DNA of 64,000 bases, taken from the IMG/VR virus record IMGVR_UViG_3300033997_000243, positions 248,001 to 312,000 of that record. One strand, 5' to 3'. Both the position numbers and the translations under genes were made by a program. Positions within the stretch are counted from its first letter, which is position 1. Each line of letters opens with the position of its first letter. The notes under the pieces are model-generated. The model was not told the origin of the DNA, did no database searches, and saw only the letters and a program-made list of their open reading frames with translations. Of this stretch, positions 6,314-62,413 are shown one piece after another.

Positions 6314-9262
6314 TTATTTTCCTGTTCGTTTTACACCAATGAATTTTGTCGAACCCGAATAAGTTTTGTTTCCGGTTGTAACAGTAAGTGCATTCATTCC
6401 GCCCGTGAGTTTTTTCAACAGTGCTAACGGTGGCTGAACTTTCTTACTTTCAACCTCACCAACCAAATGCTCTTGATAATCTGGATTAGTTAAACCAAAA
6501 TAACAAAGCGCGGCTGCTCTCCAAAGATCATCGGTGAATCCATTTCCTTTTTCAACAGATTTCTTACCAACATCAACAACGGTTGCAAGTTGCAACAGCA
6601 AATGATGTACAGGTCTACCTTCAAAACACGCTGGATAATCATCGAGGTTACTAGCAAGGATATTTTTAATGCTAGGATCTTCAATGTTTGGTATTTTGAA
6701 TTGACCCATTTCAATAGCTGTTTTAACTTCGTACATATCGTTGTAGCGTAAGCTATATTGACCTGACACTTTTAAACTATCATAGGTGGCTTGAGCATCT
6801 TGCAATAACTTGATACTATTCCAACGGTCTGCTAGAAGTATACTGCAATTGCGCTGTTCAATAAGTGGAAGTACAGCATCTGCAAAAACAGAAGTGAAAC
6901 TTATTGGAATACCAGGAAGAGCATTTATTTCTAAAAGGCAATCCATGTGAGGAATACCATCATGCAAAGATCCACAGACTATGGCAAAACAGTTGTTAGA
7001 GAATCCAGCATCAATAGCCATAACACTCCTAGAACCATTTTGTTTGACGTTAAGTAACTCAACGGTTCTGTGCTTTTCGTCTCGACTGATACGAATAGTT
7101 TTGAGCGCATATTTAACCCAATTTTTACCGCTAGTTCTAACAGTCTCTTCAAGTAATCTGTGATTACTCATAAACGGATTACTTGATAAACTTGGCTCGG
7201 CTCCAAAGTCTCGTGCAGCTCCAATAGGATCTTTACGATATTCTTCACGTATCAATTCACCATCAAATGGAATATGTGGATTCATTTTCCATGTTGGACG
7301 ATGAAGGCCAAGCATCTTACGACTGCCCAAACTTTGTTTATAAAGTTCCATGATTTTGTCACGGATGTTATTTGGAGAACTTACGTTCAACATATATCCG
7401 GTTAACATGAATTGATCAAAGCCTTGTTCGACTAAACGCTTTTCACTTTGTCTGGCAGTAGCCAAACTGTTTGACATTGCTTTATAAACTTCGTGCGCGT
7501 TATCCTTAACTTTTTTACTATCACGATTAGAGTCAAACCACCCAAGTTCATCCAGGGCTCCGAGTATACGAGTACGACCACGAAGTACACGTTTGTCTGG
7601 AGTTGCCGGATAAAGTTTAAGGTTTCTATGACGATAATCAATAAAGGTATCTTTTAGCTTTAGTAGAACTTCTCCGTATTTCTTTTCATAACGACGAAGC
7701 ATTAAGTGATAAGCTTTAAACCAAGGACTATTATTTATGTAACCGAGAAAAGGTTCCCATAAGTTTTGTGTTGCTTGTCCAAGTGTAAGTGCAAGGAAAG
7801 TTCCATGCAATATTTCGTTATTACGAATATTGAAAAGTTCAGTTGGTTTACCACACATCAAAAACAAATGCACTATATAAGCACTTATCATGGTAACAAC
7901 CGCAGACTTGCCGCTGTTATGTGAATCAATGCCATTGGTAATAAAATGTTGTGTGATAGGCATTGTAACATCGTACATGACTTCAGTTCTATCTGTAACT
8001 CCGCAGCTAACAACGGATAAAAGATGCCGATTTCTTTTGACGGATCTGTGATCATCAAATAATATATTTCGGTTTTCGTTTGAGATAGAAATGGAGATTG
8101 TTTCTGAGGTATTTTGAATTGTAGGCAGAATGCCAATGTTTAGCAGCAAGGCATAAACATCTTTTACTAATTGGCGGTAAGCAATAGGATATTGCGTTGT
8201 GTTGTTGTCGAATATTCCACGTAGAAATTCTCGACAATTTTTCATACTATATTTTAAAAGATCTGGATGTAAGCCTTTACCATCCACTGTATCGACCAAC
8301 AAGTCTAGTCGATTTGTAATATCAGATCCTATAGAGCGTAATTCATCAACTGTATAAGGGCAGTTTAAATTTCCCCAACAATTTTGTCCGGTTTGTACAA
8401 CAACTTGCTCACCAGCTTTTATTTGGTGCAAAGCACGATAACCAAACTTTTCAACACGAACAGGATGGTCAAGAGTTCCACTTAAAGTAGATCCATTATC
8501 CAGCTGTAGTGTGTAAACGTGTTCGGCTTTCGTTATATAAAATTCTTTTGTTGTCTCAAGCTTTTCACCGTTGAATACAGGATATTTAAAATCATTGTAA
8601 CCCTGTTTAGCATTGCGCGGAACAAGATCTCCAATTCTTTCAATACCTTTTCCAGTGAAAATATGAGTATCGCCAGTAACACAACGCTGTCCAGCAACAA
8701 CTACAAGTTCGTTATAGAAATTTAGTTCACCACTTGCAATAAGTTCGGATTTACGTGCGCCACACTTTGGACAAACACCATGATGCAAAAGAGACACTTT
8801 TCTGGAAAGTGTTGCTAATGGTTCATCTGCCGAGTGTCCATCATCAGAAAACCATTTTAAATCAGAACATTCAGGTCTTGGACAATACTCAGCAAAAAGT
8901 TTGATACCTATTATGGCCTGTTCGAGATAAGGCGTGGAACTAAGAAAACTTTCATCGTTAGCAAACTGTAAGAAGTTTTTTGCTATCGGCATAGAACTGT
9001 CATCTATACGCAAATCTTTAGAGATCGGCCTAGCATTATCCAGTTCATCATATATAAGTTGTTCGAGATCTAAGACTTCATGGCCATCTTCTAAATCATG
9101 CTTAAAATGATGGCCATCATCGTCGTCATCGTCGTCATGTACTATTGTGACGCTTTCATCGTCATCTTCACCCAACAAATTGAATAAATCATCTAATGGT
9201 TTAATTGCACTAGGTTTTTTGGCTTTACCTATTGGCTTCTTTTTCTTTATCTGCTTTACCAT
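6314..9262 (-). CDS. terL: terminase large subunit with intein
   Basis: Spliced Walker A VVAGQR|SGKS, Walker B LGALDELGW, VSSP coupling motif, RNase H-like nuclease AIDAG...ADRWN...DDLWRA. Confidence 0.9.
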   Translation of the reverse strand: MVKQIKKKKPIGKAKKPSAIKPLDDLFNLLGEDDDESVTIVHDDDDDDDGHHFKHDLEDGHEVLDLEQLIYDELDNARPISKDLRIDDSSMPIAKNFLQFANDESFLSSTPYLEQAIIGIKLFAEYCPRPECSDLKWFSDDGHSADEPLATLSRKVSLLHHGVCPKCGARKSELIASGELNFYNELVVVAGQRCVTGDTHIFTGKGIERIGDLVPRNAKQGYNDFKYPVFNGEKLETTKEFYITKAEHVYTLQLDNGSTLSGTLDHPVRVEKFGYRALHQIKAGEQVVVQTGQNCWGNLNCPYTVDELRSIGSDITNRLDLLVDTVDGKGLHPDLLKYSMKNCREFLRGIFDNNTTQYPIAYRQLVKDVYALLLNIGILPTIQNTSETISISISNENRNILFDDHRSVKRNRHLLSVVSCGVTDRTEVMYDVTMPITQHFITNGIDSHNSGKSAVVTMISAYIVHLFLMCGKPTELFNIRNNEILHGTFLALTLGQATQNLWEPFLGYINNSPWFKAYHLMLRRYEKKYGEVLLKLKDTFIDYRHRNLKLYPATPDKRVLRGRTRILGALDELGWFDSNRDSKKVKDNAHEVYKAMSNSLATARQSEKRLVEQGFDQFMLTGYMLNVSSPNNIRDKIMELYKQSLGSRKMLGLHRPTWKMNPHIPFDGELIREEYRKDPIGAARDFGAEPSLSSNPFMSNHRLLEETVRTSGKNWVKYALKTIRISRDEKHRTVELLNVKQNGSRSVMAIDAGFSNNCFAIVCGSLHDGIPHMDCLLEINALPGIPISFTSVFADAVLPLIEQRNCSILLADRWNSIKLLQDAQATYDSLKVSGQYSLRYNDMYEVKTAIEMGQFKIPNIEDPSIKNILASNLDDYPACFEGRPVHHLLLQLATVVDVGKKSVEKGNGFTDDLWRAAALCYFGLTNPDYQEHLVGEVESKKVQPPLALLKKLTGGMNALTVTTGNKTYSGSTKFIGVKRTGK
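7916..8683 (-). mobile_element. intein (256 aa) in terminase Walker A, degenerate LAGLIDADG remnant
   Basis: Starts CVTGDT, block B GTLDHPV, block F MYDVTM, ends NGIDSHN followed by Ser. Confidence 0.92.
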
Positions 9263-16018: not shown

Positions 16019-16043
16019 AGAGGATTATAAATTATAATCCTCT
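16019..16043. terminator. perfect palindrome after topoisomerase A gene
   Basis: AGAGGATTATAA-A-TTATAATCCTCT. Confidence 0.5.
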
Positions 16044-21510: not shown

Positions 21511-21978
21511 TTATTCAAAATCGAAGTCGTTATTTTTCTTTTTTGTAGAAGGCTTTTTGTCAGCTTTCTTGTCTGACTTGGCCGGAGCTTTTTTGTCAGC
21601 AGACTTTTTATCAGCTGGCTTTTTGTCAACTTTCTTGTCTGACTTGGCCGGAGCTTTTTTGTCAGCAGACTTTTTATCAGCTTTCTTATCCGCTTTGGCC
21701 GGAGCTTTTTTGTCAGCTTTTTTGTCAGCTTTCTTATCCGCTTTGGCCGGAGCTTTCTTATCGGCTACCGGAGCTTTTTTGTCAGCTTTGGCAGGAGCTT
21801 TTGCGGCAGGAGCTGGATTACCTGCTAAAGCTTCGGCTTGCTGTTTTGTAGCGGCAGCAACTGCTTCTGCTTGTTCAGCGGCTTTAACTAAAGCTTCTGC
21901 TTGTTTGCGTAAAGCAGCGGCTTGCTTTGTAGAAGCAGTTGCACTTTTGTTCAGTGCGGAAATAGCTTGTTTACTCAT
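21511..21978 (-). CDS. histone H1/AlgP-like Lys-Ala-Pro repeat protein
   Basis: Ala-rich helix, then tandem PAKADKK/KSADKK repeats, ends NNDFDFE. Confidence 0.8.
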   Translation of the reverse strand: MSKQAISALNKSATASTKQAAALRKQAEALVKAAEQAEAVAAATKQQAEALAGNPAPAAKAPAKADKKAPVADKKAPAKADKKADKKADKKAPAKADKKADKKSADKKAPAKSDKKVDKKPADKKSADKKAPAKSDKKADKKPSTKKKNNDFDFE

Positions 21979-22895: not shown

Positions 22896-23417
22896 TTACT
22901 CGGCCAGTTCGGTCTGCATTTCAAAGCCGTCAGTATTTGACGTATTAAAAACAGTAACGTCACCAGTGTCCAAATTTGTGATAACATTGGCAGAACCGCG
23001 AGTTTCAACATTGGCACGTTTGATTTCACGAACAACTTCTTGTGACATCACGGTGATTTGAGCGCGTTCACCTACAGCACCAGTGTACATGATTACATCT
23101 TTCGCTGGAAAGATTGAAACTGTTTGCTTGGAAGAACGAGGTTTTGTGTGTGAGAAAACAAAAGATTCACCTTCGATTTTCAGCAAATAACCTTGCAGGT
23201 GTTGGGCAGTGCGTTTCGCAACAATACGAACACGTAATTCCATTTTAGGGTTGTGTTTGCGTAAAGAAATTTTGGAAAGTTTGCTTTCAAACTTATCAAG
23301 CATCGAAGGCTGGCCAGCTTTCTTAACTTTTGTAGCAGGAGCTTTGGCAGGTACTTTACCGGCAGCTTTTACAGGGGCTTTGCCTTTGGTTAAAGGCAGT
23401 TTCTTTTGGTTTGACAT
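22896..23417 (-). CDS. Lys-rich N-terminus plus possible Sm/LSm-like barrel
   Basis: LRVRIV...HLQGYLLKIEGESFVF...VSIFP..DVIMY strand pattern. Confidence 0.7.
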   Translation of the reverse strand: MSNQKKLPLTKGKAPVKAAGKVPAKAPATKVKKAGQPSMLDKFESKLSKISLRKHNPKMELRVRIVAKRTAQHLQGYLLKIEGESFVFSHTKPRSSKQTVSIFPAKDVIMYTGAVGERAQITVMSQEVVREIKRANVETRGSANVITNLDTGDVTVFNTSNTDGFEMQTELAE

Positions 23418-27069: not shown

Positions 27070-28536
27070 TTATTCGCTCTCGAACTCGAAGTCCTCTTCG
27101 CCAGTAGTTTCTTCAGCGTCAACCAACTTTTCAATCAGTAAAGCTTTCAACGCTTTGATTTTACGGAAGTGACGGATGTTCTGCGAAACTTTACCAACTT
27201 TATCGCTGTATTGTTTTGCAATTTCCAGTAAAGAATCGAAGTCGCGGATTTCGTTGATTTCTTCGGCAGTAATGCCTTCCTCAACTTCTTCTTCCTCCTC
27301 TTCCTCTTCTTCAGTTTCTTCAAAGAACAGGCTGACCACGTATTCGATCAGTTCTTCTTTATCCAAACCTTCGATGTAATCAACAGTAGCTTCGTAATCT
27401 TCGCTACCTTCTTCACCTAAATCAACAGCACCAAAGATGAAAGTGCGGATTTCTGATTCAGAGTAATCGGCCAGTGCGTCAGCGGCTTCTTCAGCAGATT
27501 CACAGCCTTCTAAAAGATTTGAATCATCTTCAGATTCTTCTTCCTCTTCTTCGGCTTCGTCCAGCTCGTCCAGTTCATCAACTTCTTCTTCCTCCAGTTC
27601 ATCAACTTCTGTTTCCTCTTCTTCAGAGAAAGGAACAAAGTCTAAACTCTCAAAGTCTTTTGAACCAACATCTTTTGGTTCACCGTTTTCATCTTCCAGA
27701 ATCAAACGAACTGGATCACGTTGCATACCAGCAAAGTAGTAAGTTTTACCATCTTCGTCAACTAAGCGTGAACCGATGACAAACTCTTCCATTTCTTCTT
27801 CGTCCAGTTGCAGTGCGGCAAACACACGTTGAGCAACTTTTGAATTCGCGGCAACCTGACTTTCCCACAGACCTTCTTCAACCAGAGATAAAGTTTCTTC
27901 GCTGAAGTTAAATTCTACAGCTTCTTCCTCTTCTTCCAGTTCTTCCAGTTCTTCTTCCAACTCTTCCTCTTCTTCAGGAATGTCAAAAGTTAAATCTGAC
28001 ATGCAAAGAATAACGGTCGGATCGCCACCTTCTTCTTCGATTTGTGCGCCAGTGTTTACGCTAACGAAATTGTCAAAGCGTTTTGGCAAATGTTCACGCA
28101 GAATTTCTTCAACCGCTGAACGAATTTCACCTGACTGTTCAGTAACATTTTCGATAGTAATGGCATCAACTTCTTCCAGTTCTTCCACAACTTTGGTGGC
28201 AGACTTACGTGCAGGTTTTGTTTCAGCAACTTTTTTGCCAGCTGGTTTTTTGTCGGCTTTGGCCGGAGCTTTTGCTGGAGCTTTTTTGTCGGCTTTGGCC
28301 GGAGCTTTTTTAACTTTTGGCAAAGTCACATAACCAGAACCAACTTTTGCACCGTCAACAGGCTGATCGATTTCTTCAAACTTTTGACCATCACGTACAA
28401 CACAATTTGCGGCAACGCCTTTACGACGACCTTGCAGTTTGTAACCAGTTTTAGTTGTCTCTGTGATAGTGTCACGCGAACCATCTAACAGAGTAATTTT
28501 TTTACCGACTAAAGTTTCATTAGGAGTTACTTTCAT
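27070..28536 (-). CDS. bipartite basic/acidic protein (PAKADKK repeats, poly-E, ends EDFEFESE)
   Basis: Start moved to ATG 28536 (MKVTP) with AAGGA RBS, downstream of CTGTAAAT motif. Confidence 0.85.
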   Translation of the reverse strand: MKVTPNETLVGKKITLLDGSRDTITETTKTGYKLQGRRKGVAANCVVRDGQKFEEIDQPVDGAKVGSGYVTLPKVKKAPAKADKKAPAKAPAKADKKPAGKKVAETKPARKSATKVVEELEEVDAITIENVTEQSGEIRSAVEEILREHLPKRFDNFVSVNTGAQIEEEGGDPTVILCMSDLTFDIPEEEEELEEELEELEEEEEAVEFNFSEETLSLVEEGLWESQVAANSKVAQRVFAALQLDEEEMEEFVIGSRLVDEDGKTYYFAGMQRDPVRLILEDENGEPKDVGSKDFESLDFVPFSEEEETEVDELEEEEVDELDELDEAEEEEEESEDDSNLLEGCESAEEAADALADYSESEIRTFIFGAVDLGEEGSEDYEATVDYIEGLDKEELIEYVVSLFFEETEEEEEEEEEVEEGITAEEINEIRDFDSLLEIAKQYSDKVGKVSQNIRHFRKIKALKALLIEKLVDAEETTGEEDFEFESE

Positions 28537-29301: not shown

Positions 29302-29350
29302 ATTATACTAAAAGTGGCCGCTCATAACAACCACTATTTTTGACACACTT
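29302..29350 (-). promoter_or_regulatory. class I promoter module with embedded terminator hairpin
   Basis: GTGTGTCAAAAA-N29-TATAAT; TTGTTA-17-TATAAT; AGUGGUUGUU/AGCGGCCACU-UUU. Confidence 0.88.
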
Positions 29351-34291: not shown

Positions 34292-34917
34292 AAGTAACGA
34301 TCCATATAAACAGTTGTGATTGATTTATCGGCCAGAATTTCACGAACTTCTTCTGTAAGTAAACCAGAATTGTTTGATCCGTTCCCTTGTTCGTCAACAC
34401 CCCAAAACTTTTCTTTGTCCCAAGGTGCAAGTTCAACCAACTTAGCATCTTCAGTAGCAAGAAGCCACTTTTTCAAAATCAAGTTTTGGCCATATTTTGC
34501 AAGAAGAAGATTTTTCATCACGCTCTTGCGAATTTCTTTCCAGTCAGGTCGCATAGGGCAACCAGATTTTTCACTGCCATGATAACGAGCGTCTTTTGCT
34601 TTGACGCAGTTGTAAATCTTTTGGCGGAATTCAGGACTGCGAGTTTTGAAGTAATGGAAGCCTTGTTCCACACTGCTAAACTTTAATGTTTCGCCAGTAG
34701 TACGATCAATAACCACAACGATCAAACAAGGTTGAAAGTTTGATAACCATTCCAACTTTTCAATCTGGCTGTTGTAAGTTAAAGTGACAGGTTCTTTTTT
34801 CTCTGCTTTAGCAGGAACAGATTTTTGCTCGGCCTGAGACTTAATAAAAGACTTCTTCAATGGAAGCGAAGGCTTTTTAGCCAAAGGTTTCTTTGCAAGT
34901 TTCTTAGGTTCTTTCAT
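34288..34917 (-). CDS. NADAR (YbiA-like) family protein
   Basis: WLSNF, FSSVEQGFHYFK, RPDW..IRKSVM..LL.AKYGQN, LLAT.DAKLVELAPWD..FWG...G.NNSG. Confidence 0.9.
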   Translation of the reverse strand: MKEPKKLAKKPLAKKPSLPLKKSFIKSQAEQKSVPAKAEKKEPVTLTYNSQIEKLEWLSNFQPCLIVVVIDRTTGETLKFSSVEQGFHYFKTRSPEFRQKIYNCVKAKDARYHGSEKSGCPMRPDWKEIRKSVMKNLLLAKYGQNLILKKWLLATEDAKLVELAPWDKEKFWGVDEQGNGSNNSGLLTEEVREILADKSITTVYMDRYL

Positions 34918-38526: not shown

Positions 38527-38858
38527 TACGACTTCCTTTGATAATAAAATGGGATTTCAACACGAACATAATCAGGATGAAAAGCAAGTAAACAAGGTAA
38601 TACATAGATCTTGTATTTGTTCACATCCAATTTCTGTTGGACAACCTCGTTAAGTTTATCCAAACATTCTTCTAAAGTTTTTGCACTTTTTTGAATTCTT
38701 TTGTAGTGGCATTTCTCCGTATCAACATTTATAAATTTAGATGCAACGCCAAATACAGCGTCACATATTTCTTTGGTGCTAATTAGCTTTTTGGGAACCA
38801 AACTTTTTTCAAGTTTGTGTGGCTTTCTAGGTCGGCCACTTCCATCATAAATTGACAT
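38526..38858 (-). CDS. hypothetical protein
   Basis: 110 aa, GGAGG RBS. Confidence 0.75.
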   Translation of the reverse strand: MSIYDGSGRPRKPHKLEKSLVPKKLISTKEICDAVFGVASKFINVDTEKCHYKRIQKSAKTLEECLDKLNEVVQQKLDVNKYKIYVLPCLLAFHPDYVRVEIPFYYQRKS

Positions 38859-39867
38859 TCCTTCCTCCAGAAATAGATTTCAGGTATTGATCAATTAATT
38901 GCTGTGAAGCAATGTTTTTATGTTTCGCCTCACACATAATATCGAAGCTTGGTAGAAAACTTAGCGCCCAAGCATTCGAGTGCCAGTTTGGATATTGGTC
39001 ACTGTGCTCACGCAACTTTCTACTATCAGTCTCCATTTTTGCCAAAGTAGGTCTACGTGAAAACTTTTCATTGACCAGATATTCCTCACGCGAATACGCA
39101 TAGTGAATAACTGGCCTGACGCCTCTCCAACTTTCTATAACTTGTAACGCACGTTTAGAATCAGGTTTAATGTAACCGCCGCTATGAATCCAATGATGGT
39201 GAATATCCAGAACAATAGGAACCAAGTCGGCTATAGCTAAAACGTCATCCAAGCCAGAACTGTATTCATCATTTTCCACAGTGATTATGTTACGGGCAGC
39301 CGCACTTAATCTTTTGTAGGTTTTTCTGAAAACAGATTCACCACCTTTACCATTCAAATGAATGTTGCATTTAAAATCTTGAAACTTTCTACCATAGCCC
39401 ATAAGTTCTGCGATATAAGCATGATACTCAAATTCTTCAATACTCTTTTCAACAACATTTGGATTCTCACTGGCAAGCACACAAAATTGCGCTGGATGAA
39501 AACTAAGTCTAACGTCACCTGCAAAAGTTCGCACATTTGCCAAATGTTTTTCTAGGTAACGCTCTACGTCTTTACGTTTGTAAAAATGAGAAAAATCAGG
39601 ATGCGTAAAAAGAGGAAAAGCATCACTACTAAGGCGAACCATTTGTGCAATCTTTGGAAGCGACCTAACATAGCTAATCATGTTGTAGATAGCTTTGATG
39701 TTGAATTCCATTATTTCCCAAAGGCGATCTTGCCAAAGGTCAGGATTGTCTTTGCACCACTTGACAGTTGTGGTTCTCATATTGTAAGGTTCTTCCAACT
39801 TTTTAAGTTCACTCGTTTTTAGTGATCTGTCAGGGTGCATGTATTTACAAGCGAAGCCAATTTTCAT
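38845..39867 (-). CDS. uvsE: UV damage endonuclease UvsE/UvdE
   Basis: KIGFACK, VRLSSD, RLSFHPAQF, ITVENDE, VLDIHHH, HSD, DIMCEAKHKN. Confidence 0.93.
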   Translation of the reverse strand: MKIGFACKYMHPDRSLKTSELKKLEEPYNMRTTTVKWCKDNPDLWQDRLWEIMEFNIKAIYNMISYVRSLPKIAQMVRLSSDAFPLFTHPDFSHFYKRKDVERYLEKHLANVRTFAGDVRLSFHPAQFCVLASENPNVVEKSIEEFEYHAYIAELMGYGRKFQDFKCNIHLNGKGGESVFRKTYKRLSAAARNIITVENDEYSSGLDDVLAIADLVPIVLDIHHHWIHSGGYIKPDSKRALQVIESWRGVRPVIHYAYSREEYLVNEKFSRRPTLAKMETDSRKLREHSDQYPNWHSNAWALSFLPSFDIMCEAKHKNIASQQLIDQYLKSISGGRNVNL

Positions 39868-43850: not shown

Positions 43851-44594
43851 CTACTCTCCAGCACTAAACTTACGCAATGTGTCAACTAAGTTATCTTCGT
43901 AATTGACAACACTGCGATTCGGTAAATAAATGTGAGGCATGAATTCTTCAATGAAAGAACATACCACGTACATGAAGTACCATTTATTTTCCAGTATCTT
44001 AATATTGTTCTGGAAGAAAAAACTGAATTCACTTAAAGCCATAAGCTCAGTCATTATTGCATTCAATTCAAAACGCGGGTTTATGTAAAGTTCTTTCTTT
44101 AAATATTTCACGCAAAGTTCTGTGGACTTACGTACAGAAAAATAACCACCTTCTAACCTTGAGGTGAAAAGCCAAGCTGCATTTGGAGCATCAGCAAAAC
44201 AACTGGCTACAGCAGTAGCTGAATGCGTTTCATGTTCGCTATTAATAAAGTAAAGTATGCGAGACATGAAAGCATTTTTGTTCGCCATATTTTCTTCCAT
44301 GATAATCCGGCAGCTTGATTTGTAGCAGGATATAACAGGATAATACTGTTGCATTGCCAAGCTGTCAGACGCATAAAGTCTGGTGTTGAGGTACTTGAGA
44401 ATACGACCGCCTTTGGACAAACTAGAGAAACCATACTGAGTTATTTTGGTTTCATCTTCAAACATTTCAAAGACAGCGTTAACAACAGAATCATACTGAT
44501 CCACGGTTGTTTCACCGGAAATCAGATATTGAATTTGATGATCCAGTTCTTTGTGGAAATCTTCGATTAAAAGAGAAAGCATTTGATAGTTCAT
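43851..44594 (-). CDS. hypothetical protein
   Basis: 247 aa ORF. Confidence 0.8.
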   Translation of the reverse strand: MNYQMLSLLIEDFHKELDHQIQYLISGETTVDQYDSVVNAVFEMFEDETKITQYGFSSLSKGGRILKYLNTRLYASDSLAMQQYYPVISCYKSSCRIIMEENMANKNAFMSRILYFINSEHETHSATAVASCFADAPNAAWLFTSRLEGGYFSVRKSTELCVKYLKKELYINPRFELNAIMTELMALSEFSFFFQNNIKILENKWYFMYVVCSFIEEFMPHIYLPNRSVVNYEDNLVDTLRKFSAGE

Positions 44595-44596
44595 TT

Positions 44597-45055
44597 TTAT
44601 TTCCTTACCAGATTGGCAATTGCAATTTGCATTAACTTCATAAATTCAGAAGCGGTTATTGTCGGCATACGTCTGTAAACAATCCAAACAAAAATTAACA
44701 CTTCTGGATTGTACATATAAGGCCGTTGATCATTTTCCAAATTGAACTGGGCGTACTCCAAATGCAAATTGAATTCAATAAGATCGAATTCTTTGCGCTT
44801 CGTTAAATGTATGCCAGCTAAAATATTCACGCCGAGGTTACTTACAAAAGTTTGCATTGCAGCAACACGTACTTCCATTTCAGAAAGCGGCCAAAATTTC
44901 TTATCGAAAAAGTAGCTACGAAAAACACGGCCTTCAACAACCAGCTCTACGTTAAAGCCTTCGATTAAACTTTCAGCAAATAGCTGGCAAGTTGTCTCTA
45001 ATGTTTCGGCTGTAAAATGAACCGGATGAATTAACGGAAAATCAAGTTGACTCAT
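44597..45055 (-). CDS. hypothetical protein
   Basis: Start at ATG 45055, ATGA overlap, GGAG RBS. Confidence 0.75.
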   Translation of the reverse strand: MSQLDFPLIHPVHFTAETLETTCQLFAESLIEGFNVELVVEGRVFRSYFFDKKFWPLSEMEVRVAAMQTFVSNLGVNILAGIHLTKRKEFDLIEFNLHLEYAQFNLENDQRPYMYNPEVLIFVWIVYRRMPTITASEFMKLMQIAIANLVRK

Positions 45056-45633
45056 TTTGGACTCCAATAAATGCTGGCTTCACCAGCACGTTTTTGTTCT
45101 ATAGAGAAAGCGTCAGAGAACTTTAGATAAATCTCAAAACTGTCTACCATAGAATCATCGGCAACCAAAGACAGATAAGTAAAAACAATTGAGCGTAACG
45201 CAGAAGCTGTTACTGCACCAGCAGTAGCATCGCGTTTGTTCAAACTGTTTCGGACATCAGCCAAAACCATTTGATAAAACACACCTGTCATTTTATCATC
45301 AGGCAAAGTATTATCAAGATAAACTGTGCGTAATAAAGTTTGCAGCAATACTTTGTCTGTATCAAAGGACACAAGTTCGACAAACTGCAAAAAATTACGC
45401 ATCACAACCGCAGTCACCAAATGAGCAGAACGCATCTTCTTTAATTCTGCAAATACGTCTTTGCGAACTTTGCTCTCAAAAGAATCGTTGATTCTTATTG
45501 ATTCACCGTCAGTAGGTAAAGTTAATTCGCCTATTACAGTGGCGCAGTGTTTAACTATATTTGTGCGAAGTTTATTGTCGGTTGGAAAAGAACGCATAGC
45601 CATTAAATAGGTTAATACAGCATTCGTACTCAT
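45052..45633 (-). CDS. hypothetical protein
   Basis: 193 aa, GAGG RBS. Confidence 0.8.
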   Translation of the reverse strand: MSTNAVLTYLMAMRSFPTDNKLRTNIVKHCATVIGELTLPTDGESIRINDSFESKVRKDVFAELKKMRSAHLVTAVVMRNFLQFVELVSFDTDKVLLQTLLRTVYLDNTLPDDKMTGVFYQMVLADVRNSLNKRDATAGAVTASALRSIVFTYLSLVADDSMVDSFEIYLKFSDAFSIEQKRAGEASIYWSPK

Positions 45634-45646
45634 AAAAATTCCTCAA

Positions 45647-45928
45647 TTATTCGATGATCATTACGTGCTTGATTATATCGTTAGACCAAACCAAGCCATT
45701 AAATTTTTGAACGGTTTCGATGCCAATAGGACTAAGTAAGCAGCGCTTAAACTGTCCAGATATTTCACTGCGAACATCAGCATCTTTGTAAACGTAGCCT
45801 TGTTTTGCAATAGCAAACTTTTTACCTTCTTCAACATCAAAGCAAACAATATGTCCATCTGGACGAGACATGCCGTGATCGAATTCGGTAACAGAAACTA
45901 TGTACGCATTAAACTTATCAGAGTTCAT
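45647..45928 (-). CDS. hypothetical protein
   Basis: 93 aa, GGAG RBS. Confidence 0.75.
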   Translation of the reverse strand: MNSDKFNAYIVSVTEFDHGMSRPDGHIVCFDVEEGKKFAIAKQGYVYKDADVRSEISGQFKRCLLSPIGIETVQKFNGLVWSNDIIKHVMIIE

Positions 45929-45931
45929 AAA

Positions 45932-46522
45932 CTACTCCGCAGGTTCTGGCTGATTCTCTTCTGAACAGACAATAGATTTAGATCTGGTTCCAGCAAGAAA
46001 TTTAGAGTCAACTAAGTCACATTGCTGCATTAACAAACCAAGTGCATAAAATATCCTTGAGTGCAAAACAAACTGATGCCAAAGCATTTGGTCGTTAAAA
46101 GATTGCAACCCAATAGTTGAAACGTCCACAACGTAAGTTTGATTTACGTCTTTGTTTATAAGTTTCATTATCTGATTTACAGTAGTCTTATCGAAAGGAC
46201 TTTCGCTTTGAACCATGTAGTGCATAATCAATACGAAAATCATGGGAAGCCAACGCATGGTGCGATCTTGATAAGACATTTTATGACCTTGTTTATCAGT
46301 GGCAACCATACCTGCTATATGTTTTTCTATAAACAAATTGTTTTGCAAGAATCTGTCTATGCGTGAATACACGACTATCAAATCCTGTTCTTCAGATTTA
46401 TTGACAAGATCGTCGTTCAGACTTAACCTTAAACTGTTCATGTGTATAATGAAGTTGAGTTTGAAGCTTAAGTTGTTAAAGAACACAAGAATTTTAAACT
46501 TTAAGTTATGATAAAATTTCAT
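45932..46522 (-). CDS. hypothetical protein
   Basis: 196 aa ORF. Confidence 0.75.
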   Translation of the reverse strand: MKFYHNLKFKILVFFNNLSFKLNFIIHMNSLRLSLNDDLVNKSEEQDLIVVYSRIDRFLQNNLFIEKHIAGMVATDKQGHKMSYQDRTMRWLPMIFVLIMHYMVQSESPFDKTTVNQIMKLINKDVNQTYVVDVSTIGLQSFNDQMLWHQFVLHSRIFYALGLLMQQCDLVDSKFLAGTRSKSIVCSEENQPEPAE

Positions 46523-46532
46523 TGTACTTTCC

Positions 46533-47213
46533 TTATACCCAAGAACGCATGTTTAATTGCATTCTTTTCAATGCTTGTTTATGAAGATTACTTATGCGAG
46601 GCACACAAAGTTCCATACGATTTCCAATCTCTTCCATGTTAAGATCGCGCATATAGTAAAGATTAACTACAATGGATTCCTGCTTTGGCAGTTTTGATAC
46701 GAATACTTTTAAAGCAGATCCTAACTTTGTGACCTCGCACTGACGATCCACAAAATCCACTTCAGTGCAGAAACCGTCAAAGTTGCTTTCATTGAGTTCA
46801 CTGTCAAGTAACACATGAATGCTGTGTGTTTCACGTTCGAGTTTATTAAACTCTTCGATAGAAATATTCAGCTCACGAGCAATTTCAATATTTGTTGGAA
46901 CGCGCAAAAACTTCTGCTCTAATGCAGAACGCACTTCATTTAGTTTACGAGCTTCTGCACAAACATTTTTAGGAATCCAACCTAGTTTTCTGGCCTCGTC
47001 TAACATTGAACCGTAAACTCGAATTCCAGCAAAAGTTTGAAAAGAAGTGCCAGAGTTTGAATCATAACGATCAATCGACTCCAGTATTCCAAGCATACCA
47101 GCTTGGATTAAATCATCCAGCTGTATACTCGCGGAAAGTTTGCCAATTAAACTGTTGGCAATGCGTTTAACCATAACCATATTATCCGCAATAATTTTTT
47201 GTTTGCTATTCAT
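46533..47213 (-). CDS. fliA: FliA/sigma28-family sigma factor
   Basis: VKRIANSL..KLSASIQLDDLIQAGMLGILES..RYD...G..F.TFAGIRVYGSMLDEARKLGWIP; region 4 LYY..DLNMEEIG..M.L...RIS.LHKQAL. Confidence 0.9.
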   Translation of the reverse strand: MNSKQKIIADNMVMVKRIANSLIGKLSASIQLDDLIQAGMLGILESIDRYDSNSGTSFQTFAGIRVYGSMLDEARKLGWIPKNVCAEARKLNEVRSALEQKFLRVPTNIEIARELNISIEEFNKLERETHSIHVLLDSELNESNFDGFCTEVDFVDRQCEVTKLGSALKVFVSKLPKQESIVVNLYYMRDLNMEEIGNRMELCVPRISNLHKQALKRMQLNMRSWV

Positions 47214-47961
47214 TATTGCCTCCTATTGCGACAATCTGATTTAAGTAAAGAGTTTTGTAAGACATATAACCGCCTTCTTTAAACTCAATGTTGATCAAAT
47301 GAAGATCTCGTGTCGGCACACCTTCCTGTTTAATCAGTGCAAAGTTTACCGGATTGAAATTTACAACCGTAGCATATTTCAACTTACCACGATCAAGATA
47401 TGTTATGCGTGATCCTTTTTGAATGCTAAAAAGATTAAGACCAAAACGCATATCATAGTTAAAGTTTTTCAGAGTGTGTGCAGAATAAGATTTGCCTTCA
47501 AACTCTAAAACTTCATTCAGATGATCTATGTAATTTTCTAAATCATCTTTTAATACATCAAGTGCCGCTCTTGGCGATACTGATATACTTGGGTCTGGAC
47601 TGTAATTACTACAGTTCAACAAACATTTTATTTTGTAGATGCGTTCTTCGTCAATAGTCGGAAACGAACCATCCCAAATAAGTTCAACGTGTAAGTGACA
47701 AGAGTTATTAATAATGATAACCTTGTTTTCTTCAACGAACATTTTTCGTGAAGTCACGTTGAACAACTGATAAACTTTTTCAACACTAATCTTTATAGTG
47801 CCACGAACTATTAAAGTTGCTAAACTGTCAGGTTCATAAAGACACTCACCAAGATAACTGCCTGAGATACTAATCCGCGCTTGTTGATCATACATGATCT
47901 TTATTAAGCTTGATAAATCCGCAGTAGCAGGTTTGTTTGGTATGGTATATAATTGTCGCAT
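47206..47961 (-). CDS. hypothetical protein
   Basis: 251 aa ORF overlapping fliA start. Confidence 0.8.
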   Translation of the reverse strand: MRQLYTIPNKPATADLSSLIKIMYDQQARISISGSYLGECLYEPDSLATLIVRGTIKISVEKVYQLFNVTSRKMFVEENKVIIINNSCHLHVELIWDGSFPTIDEERIYKIKCLLNCSNYSPDPSISVSPRAALDVLKDDLENYIDHLNEVLEFEGKSYSAHTLKNFNYDMRFGLNLFSIQKGSRITYLDRGKLKYATVVNFNPVNFALIKQEGVPTRDLHLINIEFKEGGYMSYKTLYLNQIVAIGGNNE

Positions 47962-47982
47962 TTGATTTTCCTTTCAAGCGGT

Positions 47983-48002
47983 AGGGGAACTTCTGTTCCC
48001 CT
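47983..48002 (-). terminator. hairpin / terminator candidate
   Basis: AGGGGAAC/GTTCCCCT stem. Confidence 0.5.
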
Positions 48003-48012
48003 CAGTTTAGTT

Positions 48013-48801
48013 TTAAGAACGCACGTAATTCAAAGCTGACGCCAACGCATCTTCAATAGATGCAATAATCAAAACTTTATCAACTTTTTTCTGACGTTTT
48101 ACCGCAGTCGGCCCAAAGTTGTCTATAAGAATTTGACTGATCGGATGAAAAGCGGTTGTAGAATTTTTAATATTCAGCTGGTCATTAGTTACGTAAATAG
48201 ATGCAGGCATTCCTACATTTTTATTTTTGGTAAAAAAGTCAACAATTTGAGCAGCCGATGAAAACTCTTCGATTTTGTTTTCATCTAAAAACACAAACTT
48301 TGCTTTCATCGCGGATAGTGCAGATACCTTAAACTTTTCCAGTTCGATACTAACAAGATTGGATATATCATCAAAGTTAATATCCAGATCCAGCTGGTCA
48401 AGACCTTCACAAAGTTCATTGGCAATTTCTGGCAAGTCCAGATCGTCAAGCGCATCGTGCGCTAAAATATCAGCGGCCATGCCTTTTAATATCCAGTCTG
48501 CAAAAATTGTGGAATTCATTTCCATCTTACGAAGATTAGCAACGACTACTTTTAAAGCAGAATATACTTCGTCAGTATTTCCATCAACATAAGAAATTTC
48601 GTTTTGCGCGGAAAGCAGTGTGATCCGGTAAACATAATTTTCAGGTTCACAATCAGATACGTCTTTGGTAATGTTCTCTATGTTCATTACCACATCGTAA
48701 ACATCACCAAGAGTAAGGCGTTTCACCAGCGATAAAACTTGCAGAGGTGAGTTTGAACCGCCTTTCTGTGGTTTGTTAGATTCTAATTTGAATAAATTCA
48801 T
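48013..48801 (-). CDS. hypothetical protein
   Basis: 262 aa, GGAG RBS. Confidence 0.8.
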   Translation of the reverse strand: MNLFKLESNKPQKGGSNSPLQVLSLVKRLTLGDVYDVVMNIENITKDVSDCEPENYVYRITLLSAQNEISYVDGNTDEVYSALKVVVANLRKMEMNSTIFADWILKGMAADILAHDALDDLDLPEIANELCEGLDQLDLDINFDDISNLVSIELEKFKVSALSAMKAKFVFLDENKIEEFSSAAQIVDFFTKNKNVGMPASIYVTNDQLNIKNSTTAFHPISQILIDNFGPTAVKRQKKVDKVLIIASIEDALASALNYVRS

Positions 48802-48812
48802 AGATTCTCCGT

Positions 48813-49502
48813 TTATTTATCAGAAGCTAAACTGCTTATTAAATTTGACTTGATGAAAAGTTTTTTGCCTTCACACAAAACTTGTATGTCGAGGGCAAAA
48901 GGTTGTTTACGTCCATCACGAGTTTTAGCAACATCTTTCAAATCTGTGTAAGAAAGAACGTCAACATTGACCAGATCGTTACTGAGGAAAACACCAACTT
49001 TTTTGTTGACCAATTGGTGAATGCTAAGGCCGATAGGTAAACCGTGATTGATTCGCATATCGATATTTTTTGCGAAACAAACTTTTGTATGAGCCTGTGT
49101 CACATGAAACTTCAGGTACTGAGAAAAAGCGTGAGCTTCCATCGTTTGATCGAAAACATCATAACTTGCTTCAGGCGCAAGACCGATAGTAATATCCATC
49201 AAAGTAAATTCAGTAATTCGACCTGTTGCTGTATTTTGAACGACTGCTTTTATAAAATCGTTCTCATAACGATCCATGAAAAACTTACTTGCAACAGTCG
49301 GTAAAGTTGGTTCAGCTCGTTCTTGCCTGTGACATTGTTTTGCACACAGTCTGAGAATTTCACGAGCCTCGTTTGACTGAGCAAAAAGTTTGCCGAAAAT
49401 GTACACGCGATTTCCCTGCAAAGAAACTTCAGGCATAGCCTTAGTTGATTGCATCAGCAAATGAAGCACTTGAAAAACTACTTCCGTGGTAAGTTTACGC
49501 AT
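48813..49502 (-). CDS. hypothetical protein
   Basis: Start moved to ATG 49502 (MRKLT), GGAG RBS. Confidence 0.8.
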   Translation of the reverse strand: MRKLTTEVVFQVLHLLMQSTKAMPEVSLQGNRVYIFGKLFAQSNEAREILRLCAKQCHRQERAEPTLPTVASKFFMDRYENDFIKAVVQNTATGRITEFTLMDITIGLAPEASYDVFDQTMEAHAFSQYLKFHVTQAHTKVCFAKNIDMRINHGLPIGLSIHQLVNKKVGVFLSNDLVNVDVLSYTDLKDVAKTRDGRKQPFALDIQVLCEGKKLFIKSNLISSLASDK

Positions 49503-49515
49503 AAACTTTTCTCCC

Positions 49516-49543
49516 AAAAAGTTGGTGGCCCGAAAGCCACCGA
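49516..49543 (-). terminator. intrinsic terminator
   Basis: GGTGGC-TTTCGG-GCCACC then U-tract on minus strand. Confidence 0.7.
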
Positions 49544-49549
49544 ATGATT

Positions 49550-49957
49550 TTACTGAGCCAGAGCTACCAACTTTTCTTTGATCGAATCAAAGTCCAGTGT
49601 GTTTATTTGGCTCTGGAATTCGTCTTTGATTCGGTTAGCACCTTTGGCACTTAGCGCATCTGAAACCGCAGCGTAGATGTCAGCTTCTGGATCATTAACA
49701 TCAAAATGTTTATCGTCAGTCAGATAGTTCATAACCGTACTTTCCTGCAAGCCGTTGTTACGAATATCGTAGCAAACAACTTTTTTAACATTTTCTTCCG
49801 TGGTATGACAAATTTCATCGTCAGAATCCGCCATGCAAGTGATCATGGTTTTTGTTGGATTCGATGAAAAACGAAAAGACAGTATAGTGAAAGTGCCTTT
49901 ACGATCTTTCAGTGTAACGCGCATTAAACTTTTCAAATTGATTCGTGCTTGTGACAT
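49550..49957 (-). CDS. hypothetical protein
   Basis: 135 aa, first gene after class I promoter. Confidence 0.8.
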   Translation of the reverse strand: MSQARINLKSLMRVTLKDRKGTFTILSFRFSSNPTKTMITCMADSDDEICHTTEENVKKVVCYDIRNNGLQESTVMNYLTDDKHFDVNDPEADIYAAVSDALSAKGANRIKDEFQSQINTLDFDSIKEKLVALAQ

Positions 49958-50017: not shown

Positions 50018-50068
50018 ATTATACCAAAAAAGGGCAGCCGAAGCCACCCCTATTTTTGACACACTTGG
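50018..50068 (-). promoter_or_regulatory. class I promoter module containing a canonical UUCG terminator
   Basis: GTGTGTCAAAAA-TA-GGGGTGGC-TTCG-GCTGCCC-TTTTTT-GG-TATAAT (29 nt spacer). Confidence 0.88.
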
Positions 50069-50069
50069 T

Positions 50070-50690
50070 TTAGTTGCTATTCGCGCTTAAATCGCAGATT
50101 GAATCGGCCATTTCTTTTCCAACCATCGAAACGTACATGGCGTGTTTCATCTTGTCGAATTCGGCTAAAAAGTTTGCATCCAGTTTAGTCTTATCCGAAT
50201 CTATTTCAACAGCCAACTCTGGCAATGATGTCCACAGCTGATAACTATTCAAGATCAAACTCTGGCCATTTTCATCAGCAGGTGCAATCGCATTTACTTC
50301 ATTCCCTTGAATGTAAATCAATCCGTGATAGCCAGCAAAGTTGGTGCGAACAATGTAACGTCCTTCGCTAGTTTTAAAATCGCGCGGGTAAATAGAAAAA
50401 ATAACTCCATCTTCACCGACAAAATAGCAGGTCTTTGGTAATAAACGATCTGCCGTACTTACAGTTGGTTTCTTTCCAGTAGAGATTTTTTCAGCTGTTA
50501 AATCGATTGGATCGTAACCCAAAATCTCAATTCGTTTTTCACGGGAATCTTCTGAATCAGCATACTTGCCTTCAAAAGCTTGCCACAACTTTTCAGCATC
50601 GGCCAGAGAACGTAAGCCCATTGATAAAAATGAACTTTGTAATGCTAACCAACGAGAAACTTCAACCATTTTGTTTGTTACGTCTTTCAT
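50070..50690 (-). CDS. hypothetical protein
   Basis: 206 aa ORF. Confidence 0.8.
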   Translation of the reverse strand: MKDVTNKMVEVSRWLALQSSFLSMGLRSLADAEKLWQAFEGKYADSEDSREKRIEILGYDPIDLTAEKISTGKKPTVSTADRLLPKTCYFVGEDGVIFSIYPRDFKTSEGRYIVRTNFAGYHGLIYIQGNEVNAIAPADENGQSLILNSYQLWTSLPELAVEIDSDKTKLDANFLAEFDKMKHAMYVSMVGKEMADSICDLSANSN

Positions 50691-54906: not shown

Positions 54907-55000
<94 letters not shown>

Positions 55001-60258: not shown

Positions 60259-61290
60259 CTATTTCTTTTTCTTCAGTTTTGAAGTTGTTTTCTTAACAGG
60301 CTTCTTGCCGGACTTTTTAGCAGGTTGGTCATCTTCGTCATCAAACTTTGAAGTTTTCTTGACAGGTTTCTTTTTCTTGGTCGGTTTGTCATCTTCATCT
60401 TCGTCGAATTTTGAAGATTTTTTACCAGACTTTTTCAGTGGCTTCTTGCCGGATTTTTTCTTGCTGCCAAGAGAATCTTCATCCTCTTCTTCATCTTCGT
60501 CATCGATGTCAGTACCACCAACAACTTTCATGCGTTTGAAATCTTCGTCGGCTTCTTCCTGTGATTTAATGCCAAGCTTTTCTACCAGTGAAGCATCTAA
60601 ACACCAAACAAGATATTTTGATTCTTCTTCTGTGATTGGAGAAAGTTCACCACGGTCAATGCTGTATTTATCACCACCAGCTTTATCATTGTCAAAGTTG
60701 ATTGCAAGATCAATACCGTACTTAGGATGGGTGATTGGGAAAGATTCTTTCTCACCAGTTTTCTTGTTTTTATGGATATTGCGCTTTTCGGCCTTCTGAA
60801 TTTTTTCAGCTAAAGAACCAGGAAGTGCAAGAACTCGAACAGGTGTCCAAGTTTTACTGCCTTGTTGAATAAAGCCAGTTTTCTTTTCTTCTGCCGAAAG
60901 TTTTTGTTTCATTGCAGCACGAGGCATGTCAGCTTGCAAGTCACGAACAATAGCGTTCGCATAATACTTAACGCTTGTTTGACAAGCTCCATCTTCGCCT
61001 TGAGAAAGTGAACAATATGGGCACGTTACACCTTTGCGTGGAACTTTTTCGTTTGTAGGATCAAATGCAATACACCAACGACTTACCTTGATTTCTTTGT
61101 TGTCTTTACCAGCAATGATTTTAATCCAGTGCTGTTTTAACGGCAGGATAGGAGTTTGTAAAAAACGAAATTCTGAAAAGTCTTGATTGGACACAAATTT
61201 GTGCATACCCAATACTTCGTCAATTCGAGCCTCGTCTTTGTACTTACTGTTTCCTGCTTTTGGGTCTATACTACCAAAACCACTTGCCAT
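60259..61290 (-). CDS. single-stranded DNA-binding protein (T4 gp32-like)
   Basis: FRFL, H-W, C...CPYC Zn ligands, KYYANAIVR, PITHPKYGIDL, KYS; adjacent to recA. Confidence 0.7.
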   Translation of the reverse strand: MASGFGSIDPKAGNSKYKDEARIDEVLGMHKFVSNQDFSEFRFLQTPILPLKQHWIKIIAGKDNKEIKVSRWCIAFDPTNEKVPRKGVTCPYCSLSQGEDGACQTSVKYYANAIVRDLQADMPRAAMKQKLSAEEKKTGFIQQGSKTWTPVRVLALPGSLAEKIQKAEKRNIHKNKKTGEKESFPITHPKYGIDLAINFDNDKAGGDKYSIDRGELSPITEEESKYLVWCLDASLVEKLGIKSQEEADEDFKRMKVVGGTDIDDEDEEEDEDSLGSKKKSGKKPLKKSGKKSSKFDEDEDDKPTKKKKPVKKTSKFDDEDDQPAKKSGKKPVKKTTSKLKKKK

Positions 61291-61328: not shown

Positions 61329-61336
61329 ATTTACAG
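61329..61336 (-). promoter_or_regulatory. class II candidate promoter motif CTGTAAAT
   Basis: AAACTGTAAATA 39 nt upstream of ssb start; overlaps upstream stop codon. Confidence 0.55.
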
Positions 61337-62350
61337 TTTAGACAGAGTATGCCGTTCCATTAACTCTAGCTCTGCCTCAGTAAATACCTCTGGTATCTCA
61401 AGCGTAAGTCTGGCCAATCCAAAAGGATCTGCTCTTTTTGCCATGAGATATAATCGCCTTAGTTCATGATCGACAGCATGTTCATCAGAAAGATCTTCTG
61501 TTTCTGCCGTAAGTAATTCATGTAAATTTCCATCTTCATCTTCACCCTGAGAAAGTAAGGTGTCCATTGAAGTTGAAAAGTTTACATTTGAACTATGACC
61601 ACCACTCAAAGTTTTCTTGTGGTTCTGTGGGATAACATAAGCTATTCCATATTCATGTTCAGAACTTGCACAAGTAAGACTGTTGAGAATCCAATACTTT
61701 ATATATGACGTTAAAGCGCCTTTGCTACTGTCATATTTGTTTAGTGCTACCACAACATTACGCAAAAAGTTTTGCACCACATCTTTGTAGTCGTAATTAT
61801 TTCCAGTGTTTGTATCAATCAAATGTTTTGCATGTGTATAACAAAACTTATGATACTGCTCAACAACACTGTTGAAATATTTGTAGAATAAGGCCAGATA
61901 CTCAGAAGGCTGAGTAATAGCAACGAAAACATCTTGTATACTATCTGCACCCAAAAGAGCTTTGTAAGGAACCATCCGATCACGATAAAAAATTCTTCGC
62001 TTTGGTTCGCTCATATAATGGAAATAAAGTTCCATGTATACGTCTTTGTATTCGGCTAAAAATTTCTTTATGAAAACATGAACAAAAGATCTTTCGATCT
62101 TGAGTTTTTTGATCAGCTCGAACTTACGAATGCGGTCAGGACAAACTATGGCTTGTGCCAAAATGTCTATGGTCTGAGATCTTTCAAGAGCACAAAACTT
62201 TCGTTTTTTGTTTTTTATAACAGCGGTTAGTAAATAGATAAGTTGACTGTCAAAGACATTTGTATGGATCACTATTGGTTCAAGTGCTTTATATAAAAGC
62301 GTGTCCATTATTTCTTGTATTTGACCGCCTGTTAAATTTTCTTTACTCAC
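61331..62350 (-). CDS. divergent sigma70-family factor
   Basis: DVVQNFLRNVVVALNKYDSSKGALTSYIKYWILNSL matches sigma regions 2.2-2.4; SMDTLL resembles region 3.2; no obvious region 4 HTH. Confidence 0.7.
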   Translation of the reverse strand: MSKENLTGGQIQEIMDTLLYKALEPIVIHTNVFDSQLIYLLTAVIKNKKRKFCALERSQTIDILAQAIVCPDRIRKFELIKKLKIERSFVHVFIKKFLAEYKDVYMELYFHYMSEPKRRIFYRDRMVPYKALLGADSIQDVFVAITQPSEYLALFYKYFNSVVEQYHKFCYTHAKHLIDTNTGNNYDYKDVVQNFLRNVVVALNKYDSSKGALTSYIKYWILNSLTCASSEHEYGIAYVIPQNHKKTLSGGHSSNVNFSTSMDTLLSQGEDEDGNLHELLTAETEDLSDEHAVDHELRRLYLMAKRADPFGLARLTLEIPEVFTEAELELMERHTLSKL

Positions 62351-62384: not shown

Positions 62385-62392
62385 ATTTACAG
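62385..62392 (-). promoter_or_regulatory. class II candidate promoter motif CTGTAAAT
   Basis: AAAACTGTAAATA 35 nt upstream of sigma-like gene, just after a terminator. Confidence 0.6.
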
Positions 62393-62413
62393 TTTTACAA
62401 AAGCAGAGGCAAT

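Follow-up and report, generated by a model that had tools for sequence, protein, structure and literature searches.

Phage-encoded sigma factors are a classical route to takeover of host transcription, and sigma70-family factors such as SPO1 gp28 and phiEco32 gp36 redirect the host polymerase to phage genes. What role, then, might be played in a phage by a relative of FliA, the bacterial sigma28 factor that recognises TAAA-N15-GCCGATAA promoters and is kept inactive by FlgM, an anti-sigma factor? Such a gene is found at positions 46533-47213, on the minus strand, of the 64,000-nucleotide stretch of DNA analysed here (hereafter the window), which comprises positions 248001-312000 of the IMG/VR record IMGVR_UViG_3300033997_000243. 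A preliminary description, made from the letters alone, regarded it as a phage-borne FliA with altered residues and offered three possible roles for it, namely reprogramming of host motility, titration of FlgM, or recognition of changed promoters.

The FliA-like gene and its product

The ORF codes for 226 aa from an ATG start, can be read without any alternative genetic code, and is preceded at a distance of 5 nt by a perfect Shine-Dalgarno sequence, AGGAGG (47219-47224, minus strand); this ATG and the stop codon of the preceding gene overlap. In Pfam, regions 2, 3 and 4 all exceed their gathering scores: region 2, for core binding and -10 melting, spans residues 8-79 (46977-47192; PF04542, E 6e-12), region 3 spans residues 88-127 (46833-46952; PF04539), and region 4, with an altered -35 recognition helix LCVPRISNLH, spans residues 173-219 (46557-46697; PF04545), all on the minus strand. 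The architecture is that of group 3, with sigma2, sigma3 and sigma4 and with no region 1.1 or non-conserved insert, and the AF2 model (pLDDT 78) consists of three helical domains with a disordered 3/4 linker. The top PDB matches, aligned over the full length, are P. aeruginosa FliA (9WSF/9WSM, E 4e-40) and E. coli FliA (6PMI, E 2e-36), with SigF-type and primary sigma factors scoring far below FliA among the solved structures. The NCBIfam model TIGR02479 (FliA_WhiG) is barely passed, at 190.4 bits against a cut-off of 189.6, and the score for the narrower FliA model PRK06986 falls below its threshold (189.4 vs 201). The earlier view of the product as a full-length sigma28-like protein with regions 2-4 is thus borne out by Pfam, TIGR02479 and the FliA structures, and the two segments quoted in its support, GWIPKNV and LCVPRISNLH, are present and align to DW(A/V)PRSV and VSESRVSQLH in the FliA proteins of P. 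aeruginosa and E. coli.

Genomic setting and a second sigma factor

The source genome is that of a complete jumbo phage. The record of 319,518 bp carries direct terminal repeats (DTR), is estimated to be complete, and encodes a large terminase, a portal, tail proteins, a giant helicase and a DNA polymerase, so that the gene is indeed phage-borne, as had been proposed. The phage is distantly related to the Erwinia/Dickeya jumbo myoviruses Y3, Yoloswag, Alexandra and JA11, with about 40% identity between the terminases, and the host probably belongs to the Gammaproteobacteria. We looked for a further clue to the host among homologues of the UvdE-type UV-damage endonuclease (38845-39867, minus strand), and that search returned only metagenomic and jumbo-phage matches; its nearest relatives, 50-66% identical, occur on many metagenomic contigs of 260-350 kb, indicating that this group of jumbo phages is widespread and largely uncultured. 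Near-identical DNA is present in subsurface (groundwater) metagenomes, and related strains in wastewater and drinking-water runs. The window also contains a single tRNA gene, tRNA-Gly(UCC) (54921-54995, minus strand), about 93% identical to enterobacterial tRNA-Gly genes in phage records.

The FliA-like protein is not the only sigma factor of this phage. A second one, of 339 aa (61331-62350, minus strand; phrog_17569, E 1.5e-111), in which only region 2 is detectable, belongs to the core of the clade, with counterparts of about 45% identity in 88 cultured jumbo phages. A gene for a single-stranded DNA-binding protein (SSB) with a Lys/Asp/Glu-rich tail (60259-61290) follows, in a gene order identical to that in Y3. 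The FliA-like gene is absent from all 88 cultured jumbo phages carrying the clade-core sigma, and thus counts as accessory, having joined a lineage already in possession of a sigma factor.

Origin of the FliA-like sigma factor

A word search of 5.8 billion proteins, in which relatives of >50% identity would have been detected, yielded only two kinds of close relatives, a 99% copy (L023, L024) and an 80% copy (L021), on metagenomic contigs. All other matches were at most 38% identical and represented cellular gammaproteobacterial FliA; in the best 80 species-representative genomes, which span many gammaproteobacterial orders and include Moraxellaceae, Alteromonadales, Pseudomonadales, Methylococcales and others, FliA is 33-38% identical to the phage protein. 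Maximum-likelihood analysis with a rooted tree placed the phage pair among the proteobacterial FliAs and apart from RpoD, RpoS and RpoH-like outgroups, from which it is separated by starred branches, on a stem of 2.89 substitutions per site as compared with a median tip of 0.24. The phylogenetic check suggested in the preliminary description therefore places the gene within the FliA clade and not outside it. No donor lineage emerges either from this tree or from the best 80 cellular FliAs.

A scan of IMG/VR revealed a second complete jumbo phage, G003 (261,032 bp, DTR, GC 43%), carrying both the clade-core sigma and a FliA-like sigma, the latter 37% identical to its counterpart in the 319-kb phage. 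Two adjacent proteins (L127 positions 590-2316, as compared with genome positions 135599-137325) are 82-91% identical between these phages, while the others are 28-44% identical, which suggests that a small module may have been exchanged recently between jumbo phages that are only distantly related. At 82 columns which are at least 90% conserved in the 80 cellular FliAs, the sigma factor of the 319-kb phage has changed in 31, and in 10 of the 82 the two phages share identical derived states, including WIPKN in place of W(A/V)PRS; control pairs, composed of other divergent viral sigma factors, share 0-5 such states. The two FliA-like sigmas also form a clade with 99/95 support, to which long-branch attraction could contribute. 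Taken together, the common derived states and the clade argue for a phage-specific FliA-like lineage.

A different kind of viral FliA is found in G004 (L128; IMGVR_UViG_3300033553_000156), a complete phage genome of 51.6 kb with DTR. Its FliA is host-like, being 48-52% identical to cellular FliA, keeps the canonical DWAPRSVHR and TESRICQIH segments, and is sister to the jumbo-phage FliA-like clade (93/87); it could be a true host-mimic. Two other sets of viral candidates were set aside. The gene annotated as fliA in Microcystis phage MaAM05 (L122, MW495066.1, 9499-13182) is flanked by rpsA/ispH and falls outside the FliA clade; it seems to lie in cellular DNA, or else to represent another type of sigma factor. 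The unverified "phage FliA" entries on faecal scaffolds are merely 25-30% identical. In the scenario we favour, an ancestral proteobacterial fliA would have been captured by a lineage of environmental jumbo phages, and would then have evolved as a phage gene.

Replacement of promoter-reading residues

The open-complex structure of P. aeruginosa (Pa) sigma28 identifies R97, S224 and Q228 as base-specific readers, with R97 reading the extended -10 GC and S224 and Q228 making base-specific contacts to the -35 element; H100 contacts the template strand near -10 and was mutated in that study, R101 makes a backbone contact at -14, H36 stacks on the -7 base, Y76 stacks on the flipped -11A, R80 contacts -12G, and D87 contacts -12/-13 (PMC12784957). 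Alignment of the phage protein to Pa FliA shows that the residues in this list from R97 to H36 have been replaced. The altered extended -10 reader, GWIPKNVCA, occupies residues 78-86, just upstream of region 3, and within it Pa R97 corresponds to K82, its neighbour S98 to N83, H100 to C85, and R101 to A86. In the -35 recognition helix, E223 is replaced by V204, S224 by P205, and Q228 by N209, and H36 is replaced by S21. Thus, at the three positions by which FliA specificity for an extended -10 GC and a -35 TCTAAAG is judged (R97, S224 and Q228), the phage protein has K82, P205 and N209. In cellular FliAs these positions hardly vary: S224 is present in 59/59, and R97, Q228 and E223 each in 53/59.

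The part of the protein that opens promoters and binds the core enzyme has fared differently. R80 and D87 are kept as R65 and D72, the other sigma2 contacts (Pa D66, S72, L86 and R90) are also kept, Y76 is represented by F61, F being the commonest residue at this position in cellular FliA, and the core-binding motif DLIQAGM of region 2.2 is invariant. The replacements at the -35 and extended -10 readers are common to the 80% relative, and H36S, R40K, R97K and S98N are found in the G003 sigma as well, the -35 helix of which has Q228I. The recognition helix is nevertheless still drifting, as Pa R225 is R in the 319-kb phage but S in the 80% relative.

The replacement of near-invariant readers and their subsequent fixation, with melting and core binding retained, fits a change in specificity better than decay. 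Of the three roles proposed at the outset, changed promoter specificity is the one which these data support, since it is at positions of 90-100% conservation among cellular FliAs that the -35 and extended -10 readers have been replaced, the new residues then becoming fixed in the phage lineage; we infer such a change from the residues, which could also reflect relaxed rather than redirected DNA reading. Binding to the host core RNA polymerase would be preserved. Judged by its sequence, the protein is a member of the FliA/WhiG family, but the promoter-reading residues that define sigma28 are not those it carries.

Purifying selection on the gene

Comparison with the 80% relative gave a dN/dS of about 0.06 for the sigma gene, a ratio clearly well below 1 even though dS is near saturation, and four downstream neighbours gave higher values of 0.09-0.20. 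The gene order is kept in the 80% relative and in both 99% relatives. Wastewater contigs from an independent study, which are patchy assemblies from four candidate RNA runs, show 0 differences across the sigma gene and up to 23 across flanking stretches. By these measures, the gene is under strong purifying selection and appears to be functional.

Probable expression from an early-type operon

The sigma gene is the fifth in an early-type operon of ten tightly packed genes (43851-49957, minus strand), the other nine of which have no known family, with no matches in Pfam or PHROG. The operon is headed by one of 15 genomic copies of an element that we call class B (50018-50075, minus strand), composed here of a 24-nt box, a GC-rich hairpin, which was also picked up by the terminator scan, and an extended -10 sequence TGGTATAAT, with TATAAT at 50023-50018. 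The promoter lies 2.8 kb upstream of the sigma gene, and the terminator scan found only a weak hairpin between the two (49541-49524). In G003, the FliA-like gene is the last in an operon headed by TATTGACA-N17-TATAAT, a promoter of the TTGACA type, behind a conserved box. The extended -10 of class B and the TTGACA-N17-TATAAT of G003 indicate that in both phages the FliA-like gene would be expressed early, by the host sigma70 holoenzyme.

Promoter classes in the phage genome

De novo motif searches yielded three promoter-like classes, designated A, B and C, in addition to terminators and ribosome-binding sites. Class A (AAACTGTAAAT; 27 strict matches genome-wide, 18 of them in promoter position) can be written as (A/T)A(A/C/T)CTGTAAA(T/C) and precedes 18 genes by 25-110 nt. 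Among the products of these genes are DNA polymerase, the portal, SSB and the core sigma, in the last case with the motif 45 nt upstream of the start; examples in the window are at 62385-62395, 61339, 5285 and 1145, all on the minus strand. Class C, (C/T)ATAATTTA, has 26 strict matches genome-wide, with 15 in promoter position, found mainly before large, mostly plus-strand genes (e.g. at genome positions 872, 14465, 69183, 77652, 91120, 91925 and 206796 on the plus strand, and at window positions 16034-16036 on the minus strand), and may represent a late promoter class.

Class B has 15 strict matches, 12 of which are in promoter position, and all of its copies are confined to the minus strand of the genomic interval 147-300 kb (in the window, for example, at 29346, 29464, 30678, 31394, 38048, 42614 and 51877). 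Each is a conserved element of about 60-85 nt, consisting of the box AACTGATCCAAGTGTGTCAAAAAT, the GC-rich hairpin and TTTTG(C/G)TATAAT (TGnTATAAT in the strict search), and is often followed by a conserved 5′-UTR hairpin CATTGGT…ACCAAT. Its layout looks like that of a cassette combining a terminator with an extended -10 early promoter of the sigma70 type. In G003 its counterpart is a different box fused to a consensus TTGACA-N17-TATAAT.

The distribution of classes A and C bears directly on the question of which sigma factor may read them. In Erwinia phage Y3, whose sole sigma is the core sigma, the cores of both classes (TCTGTAAAT and GCTAATTT(A)) are enriched upstream of genes, and G003 also has both motifs; the role of class C in Y3 and G003 is filled by GCTAATTTA/CTAATTTA. 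Since both classes occur in the FliA-less Y3, they are clade-wide and have no need for a FliA-like sigma, and class A is presumably read by the core sigma. Assignment of either class to the FliA-like sigma was rejected on the same grounds.

Search for sigma28-type promoters

The preliminary description had found no good TAAA-N15-GCCGATAA promoter in the window, and this is essentially right, as no perfect site is present. At up to two mismatches there are 20 such sites in the window against 7.8 ± 2.5 expected, an excess which results from coding bias and from a Lys/Ala repeat: 6 of the 20 are inside a Lys/Ala-rich coding repeat, where GCC-GAT-AAA spells Ala-Asp-Lys on the coding strand. Lys/Ala/Pro-rich coding repeats of this sort (…AAAGCTCCGGCCAAAGC[G/C]GATAA…; 21608-21784, 23356-23382 and 28286-28312, minus strand) mimic sigma28 matches, and resemble protein tails of a low-complexity, histone-like or DNA-binding kind. 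The closest match to the sigma28 consensus in the window, with one mismatch, is TAAAGTTT-N11-GACGATAA (7611-7637, plus strand), which is antisense within the terminase gene and probably due to chance. Only one canonical-looking site of the sigma28 type stands in promoter position within the window, namely AGAAGTTC-N11-GCCGATAA (34325-34351, minus strand); it lies 41 nt before a 272-aa ORF, and may also have arisen by chance.

Genome-wide, the -10 core shows a modest positional excess: CCGATA is found 20-85 nt upstream of a same-strand start at 9 of 72 sites, against 3.7% in permutations (rank 2/180), and 13.3% of GCCGATAA sites with up to one mismatch are in promoter position, as compared with a mean of 6.7%. 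Among the sites of the -10 core in promoter position throughout the genome, no common -35 element could be found, and at least one of them, at genome position 285977, falls within a conserved 5′-UTR hairpin. The positional excess of CCGATA is absent from G003 (2/78, rank 133/180). After masking of classes A, B and C, no k-mer was enriched in promoter position in both phages bearing the FliA-like sigma, and the candidate motif AACTAAA was rejected as stop-codon and ribosome-binding-site context. The scan for canonical sigma28 sites likewise yielded no promoter class, with the window excess attributed to coding bias and the genome-wide excess not replicated in G003. The regulon predicted for the FliA-like sigma would be either small or not on the phage.

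Possible roles of the FliA-like sigma factor

The reading we favour, and hold to be somewhat better than an even bet, is that an early-made, FliA-derived sigma takes the host core polymerase to a promoter set unlike the classical flagellar one. According to it, the protein would be made early, when the host sigma70 holoenzyme transcribes an operon composed of small genes specific to the phage, and would bind the host core RNA polymerase through intact surfaces in region 2.2 and region 4. Promoter opening would be carried out by the conserved sigma2 machinery, and as the readers of the -35 TAAAG and of the -15/-14 GC have been replaced and held fixed, the promoters chosen would be unlike the classical flagellar ones. 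Its targets are probably a few genes of the phage, or else genes of the host, and not the main part of the phage programme, because classes A and C are present in the FliA-less Y3 and class B is sigma70-like.

Regulation of host genes can be given a broader form, in which the FliA-derived lineage would serve the virus as a global regulator, redirecting part of a host motility, chemotaxis or other sigma28-like regulon with a shifted promoter code, or intercepting the FlgM checkpoint. We offer this only tentatively and with considerable doubt; it is suggested by the fact that the clade-wide promoters and the core sigma appear to serve the phage's own programme.

It is unlikely that the protein simply functions as a FliA, switching on late flagellar and chemotaxis genes of the host and thereby altering motility or surface display. 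By homology and phylogeny it is a FliA, the sigma2 readers of -12G and -11A are kept, so that a CGATAA core could still be read, and the Lys for Arg replacement at Pa R97 is chemically conservative; there are also a few near-canonical sites in the phage genome, such as TAAA-N15-GCCGATAT before an endolysin-like gene (genome position 244760). However, all of the base-specific -35 readers, as well as the extended -10 reader, have been replaced at near-invariant positions, and identity to any cellular FliA does not exceed 38%, unlike the FliA of G004 with its canonical residues. Flagellar assembly, moreover, outlasts the typical lytic cycle. Reprogramming of host motility, as first proposed, thus finds no support, in that the residues reading canonical flagellar promoters are the very ones that have changed.

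Improbable too is the notion that the protein has no promoters of its own and acts as a decoy or competitor, soaking up FlgM or occupying the core RNA polymerase for host shut-off. The invariant core-binding region 2.2 and the predicted early expression would suit such a role, as would the failure of k-mer and motif scans of G003 and the 319-kb phage to find a cognate promoter class, and most of the hydrophobic sigma4 residues lining the FlgM groove (L168, V172, I181, L185, Y187 and L191) are kept. On the other hand, the FlgM interface has undergone non-conservative changes (Pa F152 to D, A203 to N and R82 to Y), a domain scan of the phage genome found no FlgM domain or homologue, and conservation of the sigma2 DNA-melting residues would be superfluous in a decoy. 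The idea that the phage protein titrates FlgM finds no support in these observations, given the altered interface and the lack of a FlgM homologue in the phage.

A still less probable possibility, and one to which we assign little weight, is that the FliA-like sigma reads the main class A (CTGTAAAT) or class C (TAATTTA) promoters as part of a three-step temporal programme. Three promoter classes could be matched with three sigma factors, namely sigma70 of the host, the core sigma of the phage and the FliA-like one, and the lack of a visible -35 element in classes A and C would fit changed -35 readers; yet both core motifs are found in Y3, the entire record of which contains no sigma other than the core one, and neither resembles the CGATAA core read by the conserved sigma2 residues. 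Finally, that this is a decaying passenger gene devoid of function, as its very long stem and 31 changed columns might imply, is effectively refuted by its dN/dS, and is further contradicted by the intact frame and perfect ribosome-binding site, by synteny in the 80% relative, and by the keeping of a homologue in the distantly related complete phage G003.

Comparison with known sigma factors

Bacterial FliA (6PMI/6PMJ; 9WSF/9WSM) and the phage protein share the three-domain group-3 architecture, length and end-to-end alignment, the motif for core binding, and the sigma2 residues by which -11A is flipped and -12G contacted. They differ in the 31 of 82 conserved columns that have changed, including all of the -35 and extended -10 readers, at an overall identity of 33-38%, and in their setting, since the phage gene belongs to an early operon of family-less genes rather than to the flagellar/chemotaxis cluster by which FliA may be recognised, and a partner gene encoding FlgM is absent.

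Like SPO1 gp28 and phiEco32 gp36, the FliA-like sigma has regions 2 and 4, appears to be produced early by the phage, and would take the place of the host sigma. For SPO1 gp28 and phiEco32 gp36 there are defined classes of phage promoters, whereas none was found for the FliA-like sigma in our scans; it can, by contrast, be traced to a specific host sigma, and coexists with the clade-core sigma. Sigma factors of the T4 gp55 late type and the phrog_17569 core sigma also act on the host core polymerase, but show region 2 only and are clade-wide, while the FliA-like sigma has regions 2 to 4 and is accessory.

A further parallel is offered by Bacillus phages, which carry host-like sporulation sigmas of the sigF/sigG type (Schwartz et al., bioRxiv 10.1101/2021.11.12.468384). 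There, too, a phage copy of a host developmental sigma clusters with cellular sequences and is carried beside the phage's own lytic-cycle sigma. Those genes represent another sigma family and another host phylum, and the diverged promoter-reading residues of the FliA-like sigma argue against simple mimicry. In Proteobacteria phages, 95% of those which bear sigma factors have a single one (Schwartz et al., bioRxiv 10.1101/2021.11.12.468384). A literature search did not uncover any description of a FliA-derived sigma lineage in jumbo phages of the proteobacterial type.

The interest of this gene lies in the retention of a FliA-derived sigma, its promoter-reading residues rewritten, beside another sigma of the phage. 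It represents a natural experiment on sigma28 specificity, in which the extended -10 reader has K in place of R and the -35 helix contains V-P…N, and the FliA-like sigma may add a third tier to the control of transcription in jumbo phages. Should its targets be host genes, it would provide an example of a virus manipulating a behavioural regulon, and if it proves to be a global regulator of the host, the phage would be in control of the infected cell's behaviour.
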